From Klebsormidium nitens (lineage: Eukaryota; Plantae; Klebsormidiophyceae), in assembly GCA_000708835.1 (NCBI GenBank), contig DF237687.1, positions 1-42,261 on the forward strand: a DNA stretch of 42,261 nucleotides, written 5' to 3'. The translations under genes were made by a program, and so were the position numbers. Positions within the stretch are counted from its first letter, which is position 1; every line of letters starts with the position of its first letter. Under the pieces are notes generated by a model. The model did no database searches and was not told where the DNA came from. It saw nothing but the letters and a program-made list of their open reading frames with translations. This document shows positions 4,803 to 36,532 of the stretch, in pieces.

Positions 4803-5544
4803 ATGCCGTCCCTAGCCAGAGCGTATAGACCGTCCCTTCACATGACGAAGACGAAGAAGACCGGGTCGTCACGTGCCCTTGTTCGCCAGCCCCGCCGCCA
4901 CATCCACTCGACGACTGATGCAGTGGAACGTTTGAGGGACGGCCAGCTCAGGCGACTTGCCAGAATGGCCGGTGTGGTGCGCATCAACGGTGAGCTCTAT
5001 GATGCAGTGCGCGGCTGGATCAGGAGGATTGTTGAGCGCTTTGTCAAGGACGCCGTCATCTACACCGAGTACCTTCGTCACAAGATCATTACCAGGGACG
5101 ACATGCTCAATGCCTGGCAACGCAACTTTGGCCAGATGTACGGCGCAACCGTTGCTGCCAAAAAGCACTGCCGCCTGTTCAAGAAGAGGTCCGAGGGCGG
5201 ACGCCCTGCCCGTCCGGGTCGACGCGCCTTGCAGGAGGTCAGGCATTACCAGAAGCAGGCGGACTGCCTGCACTTTTTCTTCTCCGCGTTTTCCGACCTA
5301 CTGCGCTCTGTGGCACATGATTAACGTTGCGCAAGATAGGGGCATCAAGCTATCCAAGGATGCGGTCACGGTTGCGCAGGTTTGTGTAGAGGCTCTGGTC
5401 GTGCACTTGCTTGCCATGGGCCAGCTGGCTGCTATTCATGACAGCGAGCGCAAAACTCTACAACCGAAGGATCTGGCACTCGTCCGCACCTTCTTGGATC
5501 AATCCCTAGCTCACTGCCCCACCAACACCATGCCCACTCTGTAG
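4803..5544 (+). pseudogene. Viral-type H4-H3 doublet histone, interrupted by a 1-nt frameshift at ~5322
   Basis: LRRLARMAGVVRINGELYDAVRG...KDAVIYTEY...MYG aligns to H4. RPGRRALQEVRHYQK...FSDLLRSVAHD aligns to H3 alphaN/alpha1. After an extra T (GAT-T-AAC) the +1 frame gives KLSKDAV...EALVVHL...AAIHDSERKTLQPKDLALVR, matching H3 alpha2-alpha3. Confidence 0.88.
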
Positions 5545-5557
5545 GCTTTCCCGAACC

Positions 5558-5983
5558 TCACTGCCTCGAAACATTCTGCCGATAAGCATTTGAGTCGCCT
5601 ATATTTCCCGGCGGAGAGAATTTTGCGACATACAAATATGCCCCGCCGTCCATCTGGGTCACACCTGCCCCAATCTTTCTGGTATTCTTCCACACAATCT
5701 GCGTGCCATGGCCGGTCTTGTTGTTGAATCCAGGCCGCTCGTAATCGTAGAGGTCCATCTCTTTTGCCCACCAGTCTATTGCGGTGCGCATGTCCGGCTC
5801 GAAGCTCCACACTTTTGCCAGGTTCTCCCCGTACTGTCGATCGGTTGAGTGAACAAACTGCTTCCGATTCGCCCAGTCCTGAGCGCACCTGGCAAGTGCG
5901 TCGTCCCAAACAAGGGCGGGCGCCCCGTGCCTGCGTCTGATATCATTGATGCGTGCAAGTACTTGTGCCTGATTCAGTGACAT
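5558..5983 (-). CDS. CAP/SCP/PR-1 superfamily protein, no signal peptide
   Basis: INDIRRRHGAPALVWDDALA-x-AQDWA, HS-x4-YGENL, W-x2-E-x3-YDY, TGHGTQIVWK and PPGN are CAP signature motifs. Confidence 0.92.
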   Translation of the reverse strand: MSLNQAQVLARINDIRRRHGAPALVWDDALARCAQDWANRKQFVHSTDRQYGENLAKVWSFEPDMRTAIDWWAKEMDLYDYERPGFNNKTGHGTQIVWKNTRKIGAGVTQMDGGAYLYVAKFSPPGNIGDSNAYRQNVSRQ

Positions 5984-6020
5984 GCTCGGTACAATCCGCA
6001 AAGGTTTTGTTTAGGGCTGC

Positions 6021-16883: not shown

Positions 16884-17480
16884 TCAGGTTCTAGGCCTGA
16901 GACTGCATGGTGGGAGCTGGATTGCAAAGCTGATGTATCCGTCATTTGCCAAATGCGAGACTTGCAAGTCGTTGTCCTTGCAGAACTCGTCGACTGCACG
17001 CCGCACCCCAAAGGTGTACGGAAAGGGGCACTTTTTCGGATTCGCCCCGTAATCATGCCCGCAGATGAAACCCCCCGGCTTCACCCTAGTCAATGCCGCC
17101 GCCAGATCCTTCTTCACGTCCTCATAAGTGTGCGATCCGTCCAGGTACACGAGATCAAAGTACCACCTGTAGAATTGCAGCAGCCCCGGGGGGGACCACG
17201 CCCGATGAATGAATACCCTGTTGTCACCCTCGAACCGTCGCCGCACGTACTCAATTGCATCGTTTCCATGGCAAGTGCGGATAGAGTCACCGTCTCGATT
17301 GCCTGAGACCAGCTGCCCCTCAAACGGGTCGATGAGGTGCAGCTCCGCTGGCTCCAGAGACAGCATGAACGCGGAGAGGTCACCCAGAAACACGCCCACC
17401 TCTGCCATCCTCCATCCGGGCTCCTGCACAACTTCTGCTCGGAGCATGTTCTCCCTGCACTCGTGCTCGATCGGCGCCAT
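16884..17480 (-). CDS. Class I SAM-dependent methyltransferase (Methyltransf_24-like)
   Basis: AEVGVFLGD (motif I), HLIDPF, FDLVYLDGSHTYEDVKKDL, VKPGGFICGHDY, GVRRAVDEF. Confidence 0.9.
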   Translation of the reverse strand: MAPIEHECRENMLRAEVVQEPGWRMAEVGVFLGDLSAFMLSLEPAELHLIDPFEGQLVSGNRDGDSIRTCHGNDAIEYVRRRFEGDNRVFIHRAWSPPGLLQFYRWYFDLVYLDGSHTYEDVKKDLAAALTRVKPGGFICGHDYGANPKKCPFPYTFGVRRAVDEFCKDNDLQVSHLANDGYISFAIQLPPCSLRPRT

Positions 17481-17541
17481 GCTGTTACGCTCTACAACGA
17501 GATTGTGGACCCGCACAAAGCCGCGGGTTTCCTGTGAGCTC

Positions 17542-18243
17542 TCAGACTGCCGACCGTTTTGCCAGGCGTGAACGCAGCTCACTCATCATGTTTGCCGTCT
17601 GAGCTGTCATCCTTATGTTCTGCAAATGCCTTTCGAGATCTCGTTCGGTGAGAGGCTTTGTCTTGTTCACCTTTGGAATGATCTGGCCAACCACAGCCAC
17701 AGGCAGCTTGAGCTTTTTGCGCTCCGCATCTGCCAGAGCAACTGCATCCATGACCCACTTGTACTTGTGACTGTAATTGCGCAGGATGTTGGCATTTGAC
17801 AGGTTGCTGCCTGTGTATTCCCTTGCTACCTTGGCGAGAACCCGTGCATTATGTCCTGCGACTTTGCGTGCCCGCAGGTTGGTTTCGAACATGTTGGCCG
17901 CCCGCTGGCTGCCCGCTTTCCCGGGTGGTGGGGGGAGGGGTGGAGGGGGTGGGGGTGCACGGGCTGCCCTTCGATTCGCCGATGGTTTTGGCCGCGGTTT
18001 CCCCTTCAGCCAAACCATACAGTCATCGATCATGGCTCTCTGGTTTTGTATGATCTGATCTTGCATGGCAGCCATCTTCTTCAATTCTTGAACGACATGC
18101 ACATACGTGCCAAGAGATCTTGTCAATTCCTCAATTTGCAACTTCAATTGGTCAATCTGCAAGTCTCTGGGGTCGTTCTCCAATGACATGCGCTGGAAGT
18201 CAAGTATCCAGCCATTGTTGCTCTTGTTCGCTTTCCGCGTCAT
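17542..18243 (-). CDS. Coiled-coil / polyproline protein
   Basis: Heptad region (LQIDQLKLQIEELTRSL), PPPPPPLPPPP tract, C-terminal amphipathic NMMSELRSRLAKR. Confidence 0.65.
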   Translation of the reverse strand: MTRKANKSNNGWILDFQRMSLENDPRDLQIDQLKLQIEELTRSLGTYVHVVQELKKMAAMQDQIIQNQRAMIDDCMVWLKGKPRPKPSANRRAARAPPPPPPLPPPPGKAGSQRAANMFETNLRARKVAGHNARVLAKVAREYTGSNLSNANILRNYSHKYKWVMDAVALADAERKKLKLPVAVVGQIIPKVNKTKPLTERDLERHLQNIRMTAQTANMMSELRSRLAKRSAV

Positions 18244-19296: not shown

Positions 19297-19410
19297 GAGT
19301 GGTTATACAGATAGGGGAGAAATAAGTGGTAATCACTGTTGCATGTACAGTGAGCAATGTTGTTAACTTGTCCATGCCATCATAACATAATCATGTCTTG
19401 TAAGTCACAG

Positions 19411-20815
19411 CAGACTTGCGCATAAACACGCATGGCGAGCAATTTTCAAAAGTATCTGAAGATTTTGGAGGCCCCTTTTTTGACTATAGGGAGGGGGTAC
19501 GAATCCTCTGCTCCTCCGTGTTTATGCGCAATCATGAGGGGCATGGGTGATAGAGCACACAGTGCAAATACCGACTCAAGCCAAGCATACCGCCGAGAAC
19601 AAGATAAGATAGTGTAAGAGACAGCTGACTTGCGCATAAACACGGATGGCGAGCAATTTTCAAAAGTATCTGAAGATTTTGGACCCCCCTTTTTCGCTAT
19701 AGGGAGGGGGTACGAATCCTCTGTTCCTCCGTGTTTATGCGCAATCATGAGGGGCATGGGTGATAGAGCACACAGTGCAAACACCGGCTCAGACCAAACA
19801 TACCGCCAAGAACAAGATAAGACATTGTAAGAGACAGCTGACTTGCGCATGAACACGGATGGCGAGCAATTTTCAAAAGTATCTGAGGATTTTGGACCCC
19901 CCTTTTTCGCTATAGGGAGAGGGTACGAATCTCTCTGTTCCTCCGTGTTTATGCANNNNNNNNNNNNNNNNNNNNNNNNNNNNNNNNNNNNNNNNNNNNN
20001 NNNNNNNNNNNNNNNNNNNNNNNNNNNNNNNNNNNNNNNNNNNNNNNNNNNNNNNNNNNNNNNNNNNNNNNNNNNNNNNNNNNNNNNNNNNNNNNNNNNN
20101 NNNNNNNNNNNNNNNNNNNNNNNNNNNNNNNNNNNNNNNNNNNNNNNNNNNNNNNNNNNNNNNNNNNNNNNNNNNNNNNNNNNNNNNNNNNNNNNNNNNN
20201 NNNNNNNNNNNNNNNNNNNNNNNNNNNNNNNNNNNNNNNNNNNNNNNNNNNNNNNNNNNNNNNNNNNNNNNNNNNNNNNNNNNNNNNNNNNNNNNNNNNN
20301 NNNNNNNNNNNNNNNNNNNNNNNNNNNNNNNNNNNNNNNNNNNNNNNNNNNNNNNNNNNNNNNNNNNNNNNNNNNNNNNNNNNNNNNNNNNNNNNNNNNN
20401 NNNNNNNNNNNNNNNNNNNNNNNNNNNNNNNNNNNNNNNNNNNNNNNNNNNNNNNNNNNNNNNNNNNNNNNNNNNNNNNNNNNNNNNNNNNNNNNNNNNN
20501 NNNNNNNNNNNNNNNNNNNNNNNNNNNNNNNNNNNNNNNNNNNNNNNNNNNNNNNNNNNNNNNNNNNNNNNNNNNNNNNNNNNNNNNNNNNNNNNNNNNN
20601 NNNNNNNNNNNNNNNNNNNNNGCATACCGCCAAGAACAAGATAAGACATTGTAAGAGACAGCTGACTTGTGCATGAACACGGATGGCGAGCAATTTTCAA
20701 AAGTATCTGAAGATTTGAGAAGACCTTTTCTGACTATAGGGAGGGGGTACGAATCCTCTGTTCCTCCGTGTTTATGCGCAATCATGAGAGGCATGGGTGA
20801 TAGAGCACACAGTGC
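19411..20815. repeat. 213/214-bp tandem array; each unit carries a ~118-bp core bounded by 17-bp inverted repeats
   Basis: Unit starts at 19416, 19630, 19843 and, after the gap, 20667. TTGCGCATAAACACGGA pairs with TCCGTGTTTATGCGCAA. At least four units visible; the gap could hold about three more. Confidence 0.95.
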
Positions 20816-23673: not shown

Positions 23674-25821
23674 TCATGAGCCATCCCACGTTTGGAAGCA
23701 CCTAAACTCGTTCTCAGCAGCAACCTCCCTCACAAGTTGCTCAAAGGGCCCGTTAAGCCGGTCCTTCCGGATGCAGATGTCCCGCATGAACGTGTCGCCA
23801 GAATCTCGAGGGAACTCGGCACGCCTGCCGAGCTCTGGATTGTTGCTGGCTCCAGGCATCACGCACAGATACCTAAAGACATCGACATGTTGCTCGTTCT
23901 GGGGCAGATGAGTGTGGCTTTTGAAGCGCGCAGCCCGTGCAATTGCCTGATTCTCGCTCGTAGAATTCCATTGCGGCTCGAGCATGTGGAAGTAGCGCGT
24001 GCCTTTGAGATTAAGACCTTCGCCACCTGCCTCTGAAAGTATGAGAACGTGCAGATCGTCATTGTTGAAAGCTTCGATTGCATCAGTCCGTTGCTTCAGT
24101 GACTTTGTGCCAATAATCTCACCGAAAGGGATGTTTTCGGCTGCCAGCAGCATCCTCAGGGTGCCCACTCCGTGCATGTTCACCGAGTGCGTGAAAAAGA
24201 CTGTTTTGCACCGCCGCCAGGTGTCATCGTCGGGGGACGGCCCCAAACGGCTCACGAGGTGCCTTACAGCAAGCTTCAGCTTCGGACACACAATCTGCAT
24301 GTTGCCTCCCGCGTGATTCGCAGCCGCTACGCCGGCAGCCAATTCAATGCCCGCCACGTCTGGCGGTGAGACCAGGACACCATCCCGGTAGACAAGGCTG
24401 TTACAAATGGCGCGGGCGGTGTCATAAAATCGCATCAGCTCGGGGTCTGGCTCTCCCGTGAGGTCTGCATCATAGTATGATTGAGGGGGCTCACCGTGAG
24501 CCTCTTGGGCCATCACCTGGGAAGGGGTCATCCTCACGATTGTGTCCCGGATAGTCATCCTCGGGTACCGCAGGTCATCGGCTGGCGATCTGTATGCCAA
24601 GACTGCGCAACTCAAAGCGGCCCTCATGAGGGCTCGCTGCGCCATGCCATCATTTCCAAAGACCGTGTTGAACCCCTTTCGGCTCGTGGGCATGCATCCT
24701 GGCTTGATCATGTCGAGGATTGGAGCAATATCGCTGGGTTGATTTACAACGGGTGTACCGCTGAGCAGCACAATCTTGCCAGCTGCACGCCCGCCCACCG
24801 CAATACGGTCTGAGCGCTGTTTCCCCGAGTTACGTGCATTGTGAACCTCATCAATCACGAGGATTGCATCCCTGCAAAAGGCCTTGATGTGTTCTTGAGG
24901 CATCTTGTCAAACGAGTTGTGAGTTCCGAGATGGATCTCACCCACGTTGGCAATCGGTGCATACCGCTGCATCTCACTCTCCCAAGTGTCCAGCATCGAG
25001 GCAGGTGCCAGGATGACGGTCCGGCCATACTTACCCGGAAATTGTCGCCTAAGGTTGTCGATGCAAGCGATCGCAGTCAGTGTCTTCCCGGCTCCCATCG
25101 AGTAGAGCAGGAGCGCACCCCTGACATGAGGTTGCAACAGCAGGCAGACGGCCTGAATTTGATGACGGTGGAGCCTCCACGGAGGGCCGGGCTGTTCAGC
25201 AGCCTCCAGGTTCACATTAGCTGCAACCGGCCCATATATCGCCCTAACATTCCGGAGGCCCGTGCAAGCAATCTCGTTCTCCATGTTTGCTTGCGTCGGG
25301 GCTTGCAAGGCGGAGTTGTTGGCAGCTTTCGAACGCCTGTACTTGGGTTCGAGATGCGGCCCAGGGCCAGGCTCCCGGTGCTCAGGACGTATCGGTGTTC
25401 TCCCTGTGGCATAGTTCATGTACCGTTGGATCAGCTCCAGTTGTTCGTTGTCCCGCTTTCGTTTTCTGGACCGCGCTGTTTTGTTGTTGGGGTTGTTGTT
25501 CTGCCTTGACGGCCCCGCACCTCGAGCGTTTGCTTGACGGTGGAAGAAGCCAGACGCCAATCTTTTTTGAAAGTTTGCTTCAGACATGGCGTTTCCTGCT
25601 CGCTGATTGGGGCTGTGAGTCCGTCTCGAGGGCCCCGCACCTCGTGCGTTCTCCTGACGGTGGAAAAAGCCAGATTCCAACCTTCTCTGCAGGTTTGCAT
25701 CAGACATGGCGTTTCGGGCGTATGCTTCTCGCCACGGTGTCTCATCAATCGAGGCTTCATCAGCTTCACTATTGCTGTTGAGCACGATGACTTCCTTTCC
25801 TTTTCTTTGACGATTGGACAT
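23674..25821 (-). CDS. NCLDV D6/D11 (VETF small subunit / NPH-I)-like SF2 helicase
   Basis: HQ motif, YSMGAGKT (I), APAS (Ia), IDEVHN (II), LSGTP (III), EAGGEGLNLKG (V), EPQWN...QAIARAARFKSH-x2-LP (VI); intronless. Confidence 0.9.
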   Translation of the reverse strand: MSNRQRKGKEVIVLNSNSEADEASIDETPWREAYARNAMSDANLQRRLESGFFHRQENARGAGPSRRTHSPNQRAGNAMSEANFQKRLASGFFHRQANARGAGPSRQNNNPNNKTARSRKRKRDNEQLELIQRYMNYATGRTPIRPEHREPGPGPHLEPKYRRSKAANNSALQAPTQANMENEIACTGLRNVRAIYGPVAANVNLEAAEQPGPPWRLHRHQIQAVCLLLQPHVRGALLLYSMGAGKTLTAIACIDNLRRQFPGKYGRTVILAPASMLDTWESEMQRYAPIANVGEIHLGTHNSFDKMPQEHIKAFCRDAILVIDEVHNARNSGKQRSDRIAVGGRAAGKIVLLSGTPVVNQPSDIAPILDMIKPGCMPTSRKGFNTVFGNDGMAQRALMRAALSCAVLAYRSPADDLRYPRMTIRDTIVRMTPSQVMAQEAHGEPPQSYYDADLTGEPDPELMRFYDTARAICNSLVYRDGVLVSPPDVAGIELAAGVAAANHAGGNMQIVCPKLKLAVRHLVSRLGPSPDDDTWRRCKTVFFTHSVNMHGVGTLRMLLAAENIPFGEIIGTKSLKQRTDAIEAFNNDDLHVLILSEAGGEGLNLKGTRYFHMLEPQWNSTSENQAIARAARFKSHTHLPQNEQHVDVFRYLCVMPGASNNPELGRRAEFPRDSGDTFMRDICIRKDRLNGPFEQLVREVAAENEFRCFQTWDGS

Positions 25822-25857
25822 CTTTAAAAAAGACACACAAATTCTCATAGCTTAGAG

Positions 25858-27719: not shown

Positions 27720-28100
27720 TCAGTGAACCTCATTGAGATCCTCATCAACGGCAGAACCATAACGGCTTAACAGATCATCCTTCATGCTCTCAAAGCTTTG
27801 CCAAGCAGCGAAGCCTCCTTTGGCCCTTCGTTTCTCGAGGATCCTTTGTAACACAAGGTTCTGCATGGCGGCCTTTTCTCTCTCATTCGAGGGAACCTCT
27901 TCAGCTCGCAAGCCTGCTGCTGCTGGGTTGCTGGCAATCTCCGAGACCTCTGCAGCAATGACATTCTCGACAGCTAGGCAGGTCATGATCCGCTCCTTGC
28001 GCGCTTCCTCCATTGCTTCCCAGAGGGCCTCTGCCATCTCCAGTGCAAGGAGCTGCTGTGGGGGGCTCAGGTCCTCCGTGGTCCGGAACTCGGTGTCCAT
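27720..28100 (-). CDS. Hypothetical alpha-helical acidic protein
   Basis: 126-aa ATG ORF, E/A/L-rich helical pattern; divergent from the kinase gene. Confidence 0.55.
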   Translation of the reverse strand: MDTEFRTTEDLSPPQQLLALEMAEALWEAMEEARKERIMTCLAVENVIAAEVSEIASNPAAAGLRAEEVPSNEREKAAMQNLVLQRILEKRRAKGGFAAWQSFESMKDDLLSRYGSAVDEDLNEVH

Positions 28101-28126
28101 TCGGTGACTGGAGCAGTAAAATAAAG

Positions 28127-29819
28127 ATGATCCATGACAACGCACCAAGCAGGATGCACCGGTACAGCAGATCAGATGAAATCCTTGGTTCATCTGAATT
28201 CAAGTCCGTCTACTCTGGCTTTGACCACCAGCAGGGGGTGGCAATTGCCTGGTCTGTGATTGACCTAAAGTCAGGGGACTGCACGGACCAGCTGGTGCGG
28301 ACGCTCCAGCTCATCCAGAGGGTTGAGCACGACCACATCGTGCGCATCCATGACTGGTTTCTGGACCCAGATTCGGGAAAGATGCACGTGGTCACTGACC
28401 TCTTTAGGCCCGGGAACCTGCGGGACCTGCTGAAGGCCGCTGGCACGATAGATGAAATCGTGCTGAGAAGGTGGGGGTGCGACCTGCTGACCGCTATCTC
28501 CTTTGTTCACAGCCTCGATGGCCCTCTCTTCATCCGGAACCTGCGCATGGGAAACGTGGGCNNNNNNNNNNNNNNNNNNNNNNNNNNNNNNNNNNNNNNN
28601 NNNNNNNNNNNNNNNNNNNNNNNNNNNNNNNNNNNNNNNNNNNNNNNNNNNNNNNNNNNNNNNNNNNNNNNNNNNNNNNNNNNNNNNNNNNNNNNNNNNN
28701 NNNNNNNNNNNNNNNNNNNNNNNNNNNNNNNNNNNNNNNNNNNNNNNNNNNNNNNNNNNNNNNNNNNNNNNNNNNNNNNNNNNNNNNNNNNNNNNNNNNN
28801 NNNNNNNNNNNNNNNNNNNNNNNNNNNNNNNNNNNNNNNNNNNNNNNNNNNNNNNNNNNNNNNNNNNNNNNNNNNNNNNNNNNNNNNNNNNNNNNNNNNN
28901 NNNNNNNNNNNNNNNNNNNNNNNNNNNNNNNNNNNNNNNNNNNNNNNNNNNNNNNNNNNNNNNNNNNNNNNNNNNNNNNNNNNNNNNNNNNNNNNNNNNN
29001 NNNNNNNNNNNNNNNNNNNNNNNNAACGCCCCCGTGTTGGTTCATCAGGACGTTGGGGTCATCAAGCTGGATCTGCTGAGCGTTTCGTTTCTGTTCACAT
29101 CCCACGGGTATGCCAGGGAGAGGGTGGAGGCGATCAGGGTCATGTCTCCAGAGCATTTGCTAGGCCCAAGCGATGAGAAGGTGGATATCTACGGGTTTGG
29201 CATGGTCATGCTGGAGGCAGCCACCAGGCTCCAACCGTACAAGGAATGCAGCACGGTTGCAAGCCTCTACGACAAGGTGACACACTTTCAGCCCCCAAAA
29301 GCTCTTGGTGAGGTAAAGGACAAAGGCCTGCGCGACATCATAAAGAGGACGTTGCTGAGGGCGTGCGAGCGGCCCTCCGCACACGAGTTGCTCAACCTCC
29401 CCTACTTTCGATTCGAGCCTAGCCTCTGGGGTATGCATGTGGTGGTAATTGACGACGACCCAGTGAACCTCAGGATGTGCACCAGGCTTTTGGAAAAGGA
29501 GGGCGTCACTGTTGTCCCCTGTAACACTTTCAACGAAGTGATCGCCCTACTGTCCACCCGGGCTTTTGCAGCTCTCATCACTGACATTATTATGCCAATG
29601 ATGAACGGTTTCGAGATGAGCGCAAGGTTGCGGCAGCTGAGGTACAGCTCGCTGATGATCATTGGGATCAGTGCGCAGGAGAGAAAGGACCTTGACGAAC
29701 GCATGGCAGAGAGTGGGATGGATGCGTTTGTGCAGAAGCCCTTTACATTCGAGAACCTGCGGGTTGCATTTACAAGGGCCCGCCTCAGAAGAACTTCGAG
29801 CGCCAAGGAAGTTGCTTAG
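28127..29819 (+). CDS. WNK-like pseudokinase fused to a C-terminal response-regulator receiver (REC) domain
   Basis: RY-x2-DEILG-x3-FKSVY-x2-FD-x3-G-x2-IAW, VDIYGFGM-x2-LE...PYKEC...LYDKV and R-x-SAHELL-x2-P-x-F match WNK kinases. REC: VVVIDDD, LITDIIMPMMNG, IIGISA, FVQKP. A gap lies between subdomains VIb and VII. Confidence 0.88.
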
Positions 29820-29833
29820 GGACCGTTTCATTC

Positions 29834-30630
29834 AGGTATGGCCTTACATACATACATATTGGCAACTGGGAACCAAAGGGGAAACTCTGTACTACTAATC
29901 TGTTATATTCTCCNNNNNNNNNNNNNNNNNNNNNNNNNNNNNNNNNNNNNNNNNNNNNNNNNNNNNNNNNNNNNNNNNNNNNNNNNNNNNNNNNNNNNNN
30001 NNNNNNNNNNNNNNNNNNNNNNNNNNNNNNNNNNNNNNNNNNNNNNNNNNNNNNNNNNNNNNNNNNNNNNNNNNNNNNNNNNNNNNNNNNNNNNNNNNNN
30101 NNNNNNNNNNNNNNNNNNNNNNNNNNNNNNNNNNNNNNNNNNNNNNNNNNNNNNNNNNNNNNNNNNNNNNNNNNNNNNNNNNNNNNNNNNNNNNNNNNNN
30201 NNNNNNNNNNNNNNNNNNNNNNNNNNNNNNNNNNNNNNNNNNNNNNNNNNNNNNNNNNNNNNNNNNNNNNNNNNNNNNNNNNNNNNNNNNNNNNNNNNNN
30301 NNNNNNNNNNNNNNNNNNNNNNNNNNNNNNNNNNNNNNNNNNNNNNNNNNNNNNNNNNNNNNNNNNNNNNNNNNNNNNNNNNNNNNNNNNNNNNNNNNNN
30401 NNNNNNNNNNNNNNNNNNNNNNNNNNNNNNNNNNNNNNNNNNNNNNNNNNNNNNNNNNNNNNNNNNNNNNNNNNNNNNNNNNNNNNNNNNNNNNNNNNNN
30501 NNNNNNNNNNNNNNNNNNTTCTCCAAAAAGTCAATGACAATATAAGGTCTTTTTGGAGGTATGGCCTTACATACATACATATTGGCAACTGGGAGCCAAA
30601 GGGGAAACTCTGTACTGCTAATCTGTTATA
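29834..30630. repeat. 112-bp tandem repeat with an internal hairpin, spanning an assembly gap
   Basis: GGTATGGCCTTACATACATAC...AATCTGTTATA occurs on both sides of the gap. Full unit 30519-30630 contains CTCCAAAAAG-18nt-CTTTTTGGAG. Confidence 0.8.
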
Positions 30631-32870: not shown

Positions 32871-33223
32871 GATTAAGCGCACGCATAAACGTTGTGTAAA
32901 AAGCATAAGTCTCAATCAGAAGATTGTGCTAGAGGGGAAGAGGTTTTGTGGAGAGCCTTTTTTGAGCAGAAAATTGCATGGTGCTGGTTCGCTAGGTTAT
33001 TATTTTATGATGTGCGGTCTATCTGGCAGGAACATTGAATGTTGCATCACATTATGACCTTAGCTGCAGCAAGGTGGCAAAGTCACAGAACGCCTCGATT
33101 CAGAACGAGAGCTTCTATGCAATCGTAGTGTGGAACTCAAGAGCCTATAAGCCCCATTGCGTTGACTGGCAGGATTTCGTTTTGCAGGTTTACCCCCCGA
33201 CTCTGAAGAAACTTCAAAGGACC

Positions 33224-36200
33224 ATGGCCATGATCACACCAACCCTAATTATGAGGATGCTGATCCTTGTGACCTTGTACGGGTGCGGACTCCTAAGTGG
33301 TGTGCACTCAGTTACTATGGAGGAGATTGGCAGTCTGGTTCAGGGCCCCCTCTGGAACCAGAGTAGCATTGATCTTTCCTTTAGACGACTGTCAGGTCCC
33401 ATCCCCCCCGAACTTGGCGGCCTGACCAACCTCACCTACCTCGATCTTTCTACAAATTATCTCTCCGGCTTCATCCCCTCCGAGCTTAGCAACCTGGCTC
33501 AACTCACCTACCTCAATCTCTCTTCAAACAGTCTCTCTGGCCCCATCTTCCTCGAACTTGGCAGCCTAACCAACCTCACCTACCTCGATCTTTCTACAAA
33601 TCATNNNNNNNNNNNNNNNNNNNNNNNNNNNNNNNNNNNNNNNNNNNNNNNNNNNNNNNNNNNNNNNNNNNNNNNNNNNNNNNNNNNNNNNNNNNNNNNN
33701 NNNNNNNNNNNNNNNNNNNNNNNNNNNNNNNNNNNNNNNNNNNNNNNNNNNNNNNNNNNNNNNNNNNNNNNNNNNNNNNNNNNNNNNNNNNNNNNNNNNN
33801 NNNNNNNNNNNNNNNNNNNNNNNNNNNNNNNNNNNNNNNNNNNNNNNNNNNNNNNNNNNNNNNNNNNNNNNNNNNNNNNNNNNNNNNNNNNNNNNNNNNN
33901 NNNNNNNNNNNNNNNNNNNNNNNNNNNNNNNNNNNNNNNNNNNNNNNNNNNNNNNNNNNNNNNNNNNNNNNNNNNNNNNNNNNNNNNNNNNNNNNNNNNN
34001 NNNNNNNNNNNNNNNNNNNNNNNNNNNNNNNNNNNNNNNNNNNNNNNNNNNNNNNNNNNNNNNNNNNNNNNNNNNNNNNNNNNNNNNNNNNNNNNNNNNN
34101 NNNNNNNNNNNNNNNNNNNNNNNNNNNNNNNNNNNNNNNNNNNNNNNNNNNNNNNNNNNNNNNNNNNNNNNNNNNNNNNNNNNNNNNNNNNNNNNNNNNN
34201 NNNNNNNNNNNNNNNNNNNNNNNNNNNNNNNNNNNNNNNNNNNNNNNNNNNNNNNNNNNNNNNNNNNNNNNNNNNNNNNNNNNNNNNNNNNNNNNNNNNN
34301 NNNNNNNNNNNNNNNNNNNNNNNNNNNNNNNNNNNNNNNNNNNNNNNNNNNNNNNNNNNNNNNNNNNNNNNNNNNNNNNNNNNNNNNNNNNNNNNNNNNN
34401 NNNNNNNNNNNNNNNNNNNNNNNNNNNNNNNNNNNNNNNNNNNNNNNNNNNNNNNNNNNNNNNNNNNNNNNNNNNNNNNNNNNNNNNNNNNNNNNNCTAC
34501 CTCGATCTTTCTACAAATCATCTCTCCGGCCCCCTCCCCCCCGAGCTCAGCATCCTAACTAAGCTCACCTACCTCAATCTCTCTTCAAACATTCTCTCTG
34601 GCCCCATCTTCCCCGATCTCGGCAGCCTGACCGATCTCACCATGCTTCTCCTCTCCGGAAACAACTTGTCTGGCCCCATCCCCCCCAGGCTCAGCAACCT
34701 AACCAAGCTCACCGACCTCGATCTTTCTGTAAACATTCTCTCCGGCCTCATCCCCCCGGAACTCGGCAACCTGACCAACCTTACCCTCCTTGATCTCCAT
34801 CGGAATGCTCTCTTTGGTTCGATTCCCCCCCAACTTGGCAGCCTAACCAACCTCAACATGCTCAGCCTCCCTTACAACAACTTGTCAGGTCCCATACCCC
34901 CCGAGCTCGGCAACCTGACCAGCCTCACCGTCTTATACCTCTTCGACAACACCCTCTCCGGCCCCATTCCCCCTGAGCTCGGCAGCCTGACCAGCCTCAC
35001 CGTCTTATACCTCTCTTCCAACGCCCTGTCTGGCCCCATTCCTGCTGAGTTGGGCAACCTAACCAACCTCACCGGCCTATACCTCTCCCGCAACAACCTC
35101 TCCAGCATTCCCCCTGAGCTCGGCAAACTGACCAGCCTCACCGATATAAACCTCTCCGGCAATAACCTCTCCAGCATTCCCCCTGAGCTCGGCGGCCTGA
35201 CCAGCCTCACCAATTTAAACCTCGCTGGCAACACCGCCCTCTCCGGCCCCATACCCCCCGAGCTCGGCAACCTGACAAGATTAACATACTTATTCCTCCC
35301 ATATAACAACCTCTCCGGCCAGATCCCCCCCGAGCTCGGCAGCCTGACCAACCTCACCCACTTATACCTCTTCAACAACGCCCTCTCCGGCCCCATTCCT
35401 TCTGAGCTCGGCGACTCGAACGCGCCTACTACCGTCGTTACACTTACNNNNNNNNNNNNNNNNNNNNNNNNNNNNNNNNNNNNNNNNNNNNNNNNNNNNN
35501 NNNNNNACACACTCNCGCCNCNCNCCCGCGCTCGCACNCTCACCACCTCCACCTACTACTACCTCTCCACCACCGACCCTCCTCCGGCCCACTTCCTTCT
35601 GACGCGTCGGCCGCCTCACCAGCCTCACCTCGTTACAACTTTACAGCAACGCCCTGTCCAGCCCCATTCCTTCCGAGCTTGGCAACCTGATCAACCTCAC
35701 CAGCGTTGACCTCTCCTACAACAGCCTCTCTGGCCCAATTCCTCCAGAGCTCGGCACCCTGACCAAGCTCAGATACTTCGCCCTCTCCAACAACAGCCTC
35801 TCCGGCCCCCTTCCCCCCGAGCTTGGCAGCCTGACCAGCCTCACCAGCTTATACCTCTCCAACAACAGCCTCTCTGGCCCAATTCCTCCAAAGCTCGGCA
35901 ACCTGACCAAGCTCGGATACTTCGAGCTTTACAACAACGCCCTCTCCGGCCCGATCCCACCTGAGCTCAGCAACCTGACCGACCTTAACGAACTTTCCCT
36001 CTACAACAACGCCCTCTCCGGCCCGATTCCTCTGGAGCTCGGCAAAATGAGGAACCTCGAGTTCTTAGACCTCTCGAACAACAGCCTCTCCAGCCGAATT
36101 CCTCCTGAGCTCGGCAAATTGAGGTACCTCCGCTACTTAGACCTTTCCAACAACAGCTTCTCTAGCCGAATTCCTCTTGAGCTCGGCAGCCCGGATTCGG

Positions 36201-36532
36201 ACCTCGCCTACTTGTACCTCCACAACAACAACCTCTCTGGCCCGATTCCGGCTGAGTTCGGCAACCTGACCGCACTCACCAACTTAACCCTCTACGAGAA
36301 CGCCCTCTCCGGCCCGATTCCTCCAAGTCTCCTTCGATTTGGCAACACATCTTTCTATCCTGGAAACTCGGGACTCTGCTGCACCAACTGCAGCGCCGAC
36401 TTCAACTCGCAGTGCCCCAATCCACCACCTCCGGAGCCATCATCGTCATCATCTCCTTCAGTCGGACCCATTGTCGGTGGAGTTATTGCGGGAGCTGCTC
36501 TCGTCCTGGCCTTTGCAAGCTTAGGGTACTGA
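33224..36532 (+). CDS. Plant-type extracellular LRR receptor-like protein (signal peptide, many 24-aa LRRs, Pro/Ser stalk, TM), stopped right after the TM
   Basis: MAMITPTLIMRMLILVTLYGCGLLSGVHS leader; repeated LSGPIPPELGNLTNLTxLxLSxN; GNSGLCC cap; IVGGVIAGAALVLAFASLGY then TGA. Spans two gaps. Confidence 0.88.

Follow-up and report, generated by a model that had tools for sequence, protein, structure and literature searches.

A WNK-type kinase-like domain fused to a receiver domain in a virus-like element of the charophyte alga Klebsormidium nitens

The window analyzed here is the entire 42,261-bp scaffold DF237687.1 of the charophyte alga Klebsormidium nitens. Its forward strand carries a gene, here called kinase-REC, in which a WNK-type kinase-like domain is joined to a receiver (REC) domain. 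One of the five sizeable assembly gaps of the scaffold falls inside the coding sequence. Comparison with uninterrupted relatives indicates that the pieces on either side form a single gene whose kinase-like domain is most likely a pseudokinase, and from these results we develop a tentative reading of its product as a virus-borne switch. The gene comprises the following features.

28154..29819, forward strand: whole kinase-REC gene (WNK-type kinase-like domain, REC domain, basic Ser-rich tail, then stop), with the gap at 28562-29024 inside it and open reading on either side.
28154..29408, forward strand: WNK-type kinase-like domain, most likely a pseudokinase, spanning the gap; Pfam Pkinase matches on both pieces.
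28562..29024, no strand: assembly gap of 463 N, an estimated length; the sequences on its two sides are contiguous in intact L003 and L010.
29439..29768, forward strand: REC domain; Pfam Response_reg, E 3.5e-22.
29769..29816, forward strand: conserved basic Ser-rich C-terminal tail, which prolongs REC helix α5 (alignment A1; AlphaFold2 model of the relative P0005).

Comparison with relatives places the conserved start codon at the ATG at 28154; an earlier note on this DNA had chosen the ATG at 28127, which the relatives do not share. The N-terminal piece (28154-28561) is open for 136 codons and the C-terminal piece (29025-29816) for 264 codons, with no stop in either. A second gap (29914-30518) begins 95 nt past the stop codon. 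The C-terminal two thirds of the coding sequence thus lie on an 889-nt island with a gap on each side, and their placement depends on the scaffolding. As written in the scaffold, the two pieces lie in different frames, which is uninformative because the gap length of 463 N is only an estimate. The pieces were searched separately and never joined; the intact relatives P0003-P0010 and the open reading frame (ORF) of L010 stood for the whole protein, and the public gene model P0001 was used solely as one row of alignment A1.

In Pfam, the N-terminal piece (28127-28561) matched Pkinase at profile positions 4-117 (E 2e-12), and the C-terminal piece (29025-29816) matched Pkinase weakly at positions 148-263 (E 3e-4) and then the full Response_reg domain (E 1.9e-21). 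The Pkinase positions between the two matches are accounted for by unaligned residues at the gap edges. On the intact ORFs of L003 and L010, the end of the N-terminal piece adjoins the start of the C-terminal piece, with a 4-nt overlap in the coordinates of the relative, and both pieces are in the frame of that ORF. L010 is a second K. nitens scaffold (DF238411) with an intact ORF of 395 amino acids, to which the window pieces are 88-92% identical in DNA and 91-92% identical in protein. All eight uninterrupted relatives P0003-P0010 (394-399 amino acids, 57-83% identical) read through the position of the gap. As the two edges of the gap meet in intact relatives, L010 being from K. nitens itself, these alignments indicate that kinase-REC is one gene rather than two and that no coding sequence is missing at the gap, the contents of the gap themselves being unread; the earlier suggestion that almost nothing was missing is borne out. 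A few bases at either gap edge fail to match the relatives. A 74-nt direct repeat (97% identical) lies at 29834-29907 and 30557-30630, on both edges of gap 29914-30518, and starts 15 nt after the stop codon; it suggests that the scaffold gaps may be unrecognized overlaps of contig ends and hence spurious.

The K. nitens assembly holds three copies of the kinase-REC gene: that of the window, that of L004 (DF237577; L004:10001-11175), which has one frame change, and the intact copy of L010. The public models of all three are distorted. P0001, a 390-residue model from the window contig named 'Putative cheY-homologous receiver domain containing Serine/Threonine protein kinase', spans the gap with an intron; 5 residues present in every uninterrupted relative are missing from it. 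P0002 (337 residues), the model of the L004 copy, skips part of the gene with the frame change. P0031 (507 residues; L010:793-4611) leaves the intact 395-residue ORF near its end and is spliced across a gap into a downstream NADAR-domain region. Counts of host kinases and response regulators in this key charophyte genome may include viral genes.

The copies of the gene differ mostly at synonymous positions. Between copies, the proportion of synonymous differences (pS) was 0.5-0.85, at or near saturation, versus a proportion of nonsynonymous differences (pN) of 0.08-0.3, and the ratio of nonsynonymous to synonymous substitution rates (dN/dS) was 0.03-0.16 where it could be estimated. When all comparisons were taken, including those of the K. 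nitens copies, pN was 0.05-0.3, pS 0.25-0.85, and dN/dS 0.03-0.17. The kinase-like half gave pN of 0.10-0.22 versus pS of 0.53-0.85, and the REC half is equally constrained. The window copy and L010, which share a genome, differ by a dS of 0.30-0.46 with a dN/dS of 0.12-0.17. These values indicate that the copies diverged under strong purifying selection, and separate integrations of diverged, functional viral genes fit the divergence of the window copy from L010 better than does a recent, decaying duplication in the host.

There is a real, if doubtful, possibility that the window copy is no more than the inert relic of a past viral integration, silent or disrupted within the gap, while the family works in free viruses; such a state would be compatible with the best explanation of the family as a whole. 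Several observations would fit this. The L004 copy carries its frame change; on the related contig L001, the PolB gene (L001:1-5169) is split over at least six ORFs, which could reflect a decaying endogenous copy or assembly errors, with an intact kinase-REC gene 5 kb away; and a reverse-transcriptase ORF is present in L003. Methylation is enriched on the viral genes of K. nitens (PMC12344493), and the few unmatched bases at the gap edges would also fit a disrupted copy. Set against this, both pieces of the window gene are free of stops, their differences from intact L010 are mostly synonymous, and the 74-nt repeat on the edges of the next gap makes the gaps look like contig-end overlaps, not missing sequence.

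The kinase-like domain is closest to WNK kinases by sequence and by fold. A search of the PDB with the family profile gave the kinase domains of WNK3 and WNK1 at 152 bits (E 2e-43); the next kinase was MAP3K2 (E 1.7e-22), and the PAKs followed at about 1e-15. An AlphaFold2 model of the intact relative P0005 was well predicted (mean pLDDT 90.8, pTM 0.82), and its 30 best Foldseek matches in the PDB were all WNK1 or WNK3. In a HMMER search of 1.84 billion representative sequences, the score fell after the family from 356 to about 190 bits, where matches to kinase domains began; the named kinases among these were green plant or algal WNKs or entries of the Joint Genome Institute (JGI) called 'WNK lysine deficient protein kinase'. 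The β2 Lys of WNKs is kept in all 10 family members aligned and in the window, and the β3 column is Ser (9) or Cys (1). These comparisons of sequence and fold indicate a green-lineage WNK kinase as the ancestor of the N-terminal domain, which has retained the WNK fold and the β2 Lys, in agreement with the WNK likeness that the earlier note had proposed from motifs.

The human WNK1 and WNK3 kinase domains (PDB 4q2a, 5o23, 5o2c, 9d3f) and plant WNKs are thus the best match in both sequence and fold. They have in common with the family a Lys in β2 and none in β3, the Leu after the DLG Asp column, and the conserved subdomains IX and XI. Identity between the family and WNKs is nevertheless only 27-37%, and the family has lost the second Gly of the Gly loop, the αC Glu, the HRD His and Asp, the register of the DLG Asp, and the Gly-Thr of the P+1 loop. 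Its members are proteins of about 395 residues encoded without introns in a viral context. They also lack the CCT-like autoinhibitory domain: in Pfam, the kinase-like part is followed by Response_reg only and not by the CCT-like/PF2-like domain PF12202, which is present in several of the cellular WNK matches. The REC domain follows the final helix of the kinase-like fold at a distance of about 10 residues and occupies the place that the CCT-like domain has in cellular WNKs (PDB 5o2c).

Catalytic residues were tabulated by aligning the 10 family members and both window pieces with 15 green-lineage WNK-type kinases. The second Gly of the Gly loop, Gly in 15/15 green WNKs, is Ser in 10/10 members; the αC Glu (Glu in 14 green WNKs, Gln in one) is replaced by Thr, Ser or Ala in all 10; and the HRD His, invariant in the green WNKs, is Ile or Val. 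At the HRD Asp (15/15 in green WNKs), seven members have Asn, two Ser and one Pro. The column of the DLG Asp (15/15) holds Leu or Ile in the family, with an Asp one column earlier in 9/10, and the DLG Gly (15/15) is Ser. The HRD Arg column, Gly in one of the 15 green WNKs, is absent from three family members. Other positions are kept: the β2 Lys (10/10 versus 15/15), the catalytic-loop Asn (9/10 versus 15/15), and the Pro (10/10 versus 14/15) and Glu (9/10 versus 15/15) of the APE motif. The window has the commonest residue of the family at every position tabulated, and four catalytic elements are lost in all members, including the most divergent one, P0034 (37% identical).

Four separate catalytic losses together with a well-predicted fold are the signature of a pseudokinase, and here the fold is kept, the catalytic motifs are lost and the sequence is constrained. 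Replacement of the HRD Asp by Asn is, moreover, a standard way of inactivating a kinase. Judged from these residues, the kinase-like domain is most likely a pseudokinase that binds rather than catalyzes. All kinase and REC motifs quoted in the earlier note are present in the sequence, and the losses from which it had proposed a probable pseudokinase hold column by column throughout the family.

The main rival for the family is that the protein is an unusual but active Ser/Thr kinase with its REC domain as the switch, which would make it a response regulator with a kinase output in a virus of eukaryotes. The residues kept in the family, namely the β2 Lys, the catalytic-loop Asn, the Asp beside the DLG column and the Pro-Glu of the APE motif (9/10), would suit such an enzyme, as would the strong constraint on the kinase-like half, and fusions of REC to a Pkinase domain with full catalytic motifs do occur in bacteria-like sequences such as P0027. 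We nonetheless consider an active kinase unlikely: no member, not even P0034, retains the second Gly-loop Gly, the αC Glu, the HRD Asp or the DLG register, exchange of the HRD Asp for Asn is a standard means of inactivating kinases, and three members are missing the HRD Arg column altogether.

The REC domain, by contrast with the kinase-like domain, has kept its signature residues. The REC part alone scored 79.1 bits against a Pfam cut-off of 30.2 (PF00072) and covered profile positions 1-109 of 111. Its acidic pair, acceptor Asp, Thr/Ser and Lys-Pro align in register with the receivers of RcsC and AHK4, and the five signature residues are kept in 9-10 of the 10 members and in the window, down to copies that are 37% identical; the earlier description of an intact receiver thus holds beyond the window. 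The best solved relatives are receivers of hybrid histidine kinases (Escherichia coli RcsC, Arabidopsis AHK4/CRE1 and Xanthomonas RpfC); unlike these, the REC domain here is joined to a Ser/Thr-type kinase-like domain, not to a histidine kinase core. Outside the family, the best matches to REC were multi-receiver bacterial proteins, whose scores sum over several stretches, and the domain could not be traced to a host, a bacterium or a virus. A tblastn search of the C-terminal piece against a phage collection returned bacterial response regulators only. The conserved residues suggest that REC can be phosphorylated by a histidine phosphotransfer (HPt) protein or a histidine kinase. After REC, a tail of the form Arg-x-Arg-Leu-x-Arg-x-Ser-Ser/Asn is conserved in all 10 sequences of alignment A1, and the model of P0005 has a helix over the corresponding residues 374-398; the tail is a candidate phosphorylation or docking site.

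An alternative is that REC is not phosphorylated at all and serves as a module for interaction or dimerization, like the receivers of plant pseudo-response regulators, or as a sink competing only for HPt binding. Pseudo-receivers typically lose the acceptor Asp, and all five phosphoryl-transfer residues of this REC domain are kept in 9-10 of 10 members, so we regard the alternative as improbable. It would, on the other hand, accord with the lack of histidine kinase and HPt genes near the relatives (see below) and with the finding that plant WNK1 (AtWNK1) binds and phosphorylates APRR3, a protein with a receiver-like domain (PMC10743480).

The kinase-REC architecture is rare. Among the 1.84 billion representatives searched with HMMER, it formed two clusters at 50% identity (P0009 and P0034) plus fragments. 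At the 90% level the family amounts to about a dozen sequences, three from K. nitens and the others from two JGI samples, Logan run assemblies and one assembly of the European Nucleotide Archive. Every uninterrupted member is a single intronless ORF, and the contigs are dense gene arrays, several of which include genes typical of giant viruses. L001 carries PolB, Pox_A32, RNase III, dUTPase, GH9 and EsV_1_7_cys genes; L009 carries a YqaJ exonuclease, TFIIB, cyclin, SET and dUTPase; and in L006 and L007, dUTPase and dCMP deaminase adjoin the kinase-REC gene. The window has at least eight genes in common with L001 and L003, namely a histone-fold pair, a CAP-domain gene, a zinc-finger/EsV-1-7-like gene, a Methyltransf_24 gene, an SNF2 helicase, two ORFs without assigned function and the divergent upstream neighbor of kinase-REC. 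The neighboring features are as follows.

4957..5541, forward strand: histone-fold ORF, common to L003 or L001.
5561..6001, reverse strand: CAP-domain ORF, common to L003 or L001.
16887..17582, reverse strand: Methyltransf_24 gene, with counterparts in L001, L002 and L005 that precede kinase-REC by one or two genes.
23677..25848, reverse strand: SNF2-family helicase gene, 72% identical to its L003 counterpart.
27723..28100, reverse strand: divergent upstream neighbor of 126 amino acids, syntenic in relatives; no Pfam or PDB match.
28101..28153, no strand: short intergenic region with an A-rich block common to the closest relatives.

The upstream neighbor is syntenic in L001, L005, L008 and L010 (58-90% identical) and has a truncated counterpart in L003. 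It was considered as an HPt protein and rejected, as the shared aligned part of its homologues contains no His and it has no match in Pfam or the PDB. The A-rich block, which lies some 30 nt before the conserved ATG, is common to the window, L010, L003, L005 and L008 and may be a promoter element of the genes of the element. Elsewhere in the window, positions 33035-36532 hold a long, gap-interrupted array of plant-type 24-residue leucine-rich repeats with a 72-nt period and a strong C-skew, from a host or a virus-captured gene, and a 213-nt tandem repeat (2.6 copies, 93% matches) at 19399-19954 abuts the gap at 19956-20621.

The K. flaccidum/nitens genome is known to hold Phycodnaviridae-like core genes with viral neighbors (PMC5294986). 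It is because of this report and of the gene content in common with the contigs of the relatives that we retain the label of a giant-virus element, as the earlier note had called it; that part of the label stands through the genes shared with L001 and L003, the former with PolB and A32, but the ORFs scanned in the window itself supplied no hallmark gene. Held jointly with the switch proposed below, the view that kinase-REC, an intronless gene, belongs to a giant-virus-derived (Phycodnaviridae-like) element inserted into the K. nitens genome is tentative, if nearly evenly balanced. An ordinary streptophyte-algal host gene, a cellular WNK paralogue that acquired a REC domain with no virus involved, is scarcely credible: the gene does lie in a nuclear scaffold with host annotation, its GC content is close to that of the remainder of the scaffold and its nearest kinases are green-lineage WNKs, but the fusion is confined to those two clusters and is thus not a common algal host gene, its members are all single intronless ORFs in dense arrays, some with PolB, A32, TFIIB, YqaJ or dUTPase, the window shares many neighboring genes with these contigs, and the three K. 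nitens copies differ by a dS of 0.3-0.5 or more.

A fold search of BFVD returned only generic viral kinases at no more than 23% identity, none with the kinase-REC architecture. One of the BFVD matches, A0A3G4ZRU6, is a Terrestrivirus protein annotated 'STE/STE20/FRAY protein kinase'. FRAY is a fly kinase of the SPAK/OSR1 branch, on which WNKs act, and by this annotation other giant viruses may carry parts of the WNK-SPAK/OSR1 axis.

The kinase nearest to the family is P0044, a protein of 276 amino acids (276-278 with P0189) that consists of a kinase domain only, with the full WNK catalytic set. Its gene lies at L011:887-1717 and L012:887-1717, from JGI samples 3300060284 and 3300060285, the same two samples that yielded P0003, P0005 and P0007. 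The contigs are dense, intronless and virus-like, with an mRNA triphosphatase, two DNA methylases, an HNH endonuclease and a BTB protein. In a neighbor-joining tree of 85 kinase domains with 100 bootstraps, which is a rough tree only, the family was monophyletic in 100/100 replicates and P0044 was its nearest neighbor in 65/100. P0044 is 45-47% identical to plant WNK6, WNK8 and WNK9. It resembles the family in the Ser at the APE Ala column and in a short β3-αC loop, and differs from it in its complete catalytic set and its lack of a receiver domain. The window and the other loci examined contain no second WNK-type gene beyond the family members and those of L011/L012, and no K. nitens homologue of P0044 appeared among its best 120 matches. 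With moderate support, the tree suggests that a host WNK was captured by a virus and became a viral stand-alone kinase, from which duplication, loss of catalysis and fusion to REC led to the present family. The presence of an active-type stand-alone WNK kinase on virus-like contigs makes a virus-owned partner for kinase-REC as likely as a host partner.

We propose that a His-Asp phosphorelay, encoded by the host or a virus, would phosphorylate the conserved Asp of REC, and that the resulting change would be passed to the fused pseudokinase. The pseudokinase would then alter its pairing or competition with an active WNK-type kinase, either a host WNK or the virus-type stand-alone kinase, and could bind, sequester or allosterically set that kinase or its substrates. 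As an outcome, WNK-type stress or osmotic signaling would be tied to the state of the phosphorelay during infection or latency. A host relay is at hand in K. flaccidum, which has nine CHK receptors, a single HPt, three type-A regulators and one type-B regulator (PMC5975490); a viral input could come from histidine kinases of the kind that phaeoviruses encode. The architecture, the state of its residues, the limits of the family, the viral surroundings of the relatives and the purifying selection are shown here, while loss of catalysis, phosphorylation of REC and the identity of the partners are inferred. A virus-borne, phosphorylation-switched pseudokinase that modulates WNK-type signaling falls a little short of an even chance in our judgment. 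The more specific idea of the earlier note, a decoy or adaptor between the host phosphorelay and WNK signaling, is plausible.

Several observations weigh against such a switch. WNKs themselves were once wrongly taken for dead kinases, and this history, together with the Lys, Asn and shifted Asp that the family has kept, leaves room for an unusual mode of catalysis. By Pfam, no giant-virus hallmark gene (PolB, capsid, A32, VLTF3 or D5) is present among the 37 ORFs and ORF pieces of the window outside the kinase-REC gene, and a scan of IMG/VR with the family alignment found no relative. Neither a histidine kinase nor an HPt gene occurs in the 10 kb around any of the relatives, and the window likewise showed neither. 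The sister relation of P0044 has moderate support and may reflect long branches. Finally, given the methylation of viral genes in K. nitens noted above, the window copy may be silent.

The proposed pseudokinase switch has partial parallels in known systems. In yeast Ssk1-Ssk2 (HOG osmosensing) and plant ETR1-CTR1 (ethylene), a receiver controls or binds a Ser/Thr kinase. These pairs and AtWNK1-APRR3 resemble kinase-REC in coupling a receiver or receiver-like domain to a Ser/Thr kinase in stress, hormone or clock signaling; there the partners are separate proteins and the kinase is active, whereas kinase-REC unites both in a single chain and its kinase part looks dead. Bacterial-type regulators that combine REC with a Hanks kinase, such as P0027, have the same two Pfam domains in one protein, but their REC is N-terminal, their kinase is non-WNK with catalytic motifs, and their similarity to the family is confined to REC (E 2e-4). 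Phaeoviruses encode hybrid histidine kinases that are thought to sense activation cues (PMC12993054, PMC11890097). Like kinase-REC, those of the EsV-1 type are two-component parts of integrating algal giant viruses, and an EsV_1_7_cys-type protein occurs on L001; unlike it, they belong to viruses of brown algae and join receivers to histidine kinases, whereas here the receiver sits on a WNK-type pseudokinase in a streptophyte alga.

Both domains of kinase-REC are already known, and automatic annotation had flagged the pair. In the literature searched, no paper combines WNK with a giant virus, or WNK with a receiver domain and a pseudokinase; that literature, the PDB, BFVD and IMG/VR apparently contain no description of the family, of its WNK type, pseudokinase state or viral context, or of its active sister kinase. 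If the proposed reading is true, this would be the first WNK-derived pseudokinase described in a virus-like element and the first two-component receiver wired directly to a WNK-type module.

The finding bears on the regulation of WNKs in the green lineage, where AtWNK1-APRR3 hints at a connection between WNKs and receivers, and on how integrating algal giant viruses sense the state of the host, the histidine kinases of phaeoviruses having been a puzzle since 2001. A wider proposal, which we hold as rather unlikely, is that giant viruses of Klebsormidium-type terrestrial algae carry a pair derived from a captured host WNK, an active stand-alone kinase and a pseudokinase-REC, that would read a His-Asp phosphorelay (osmotic, desiccation or hormone) to set WNK-type output. 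Such a virus-owned kinase/pseudokinase switch could act as a sensor for latency versus activity of an integrating giant virus, and kinase-REC may let the virus read or interfere with the stress signaling of its host.

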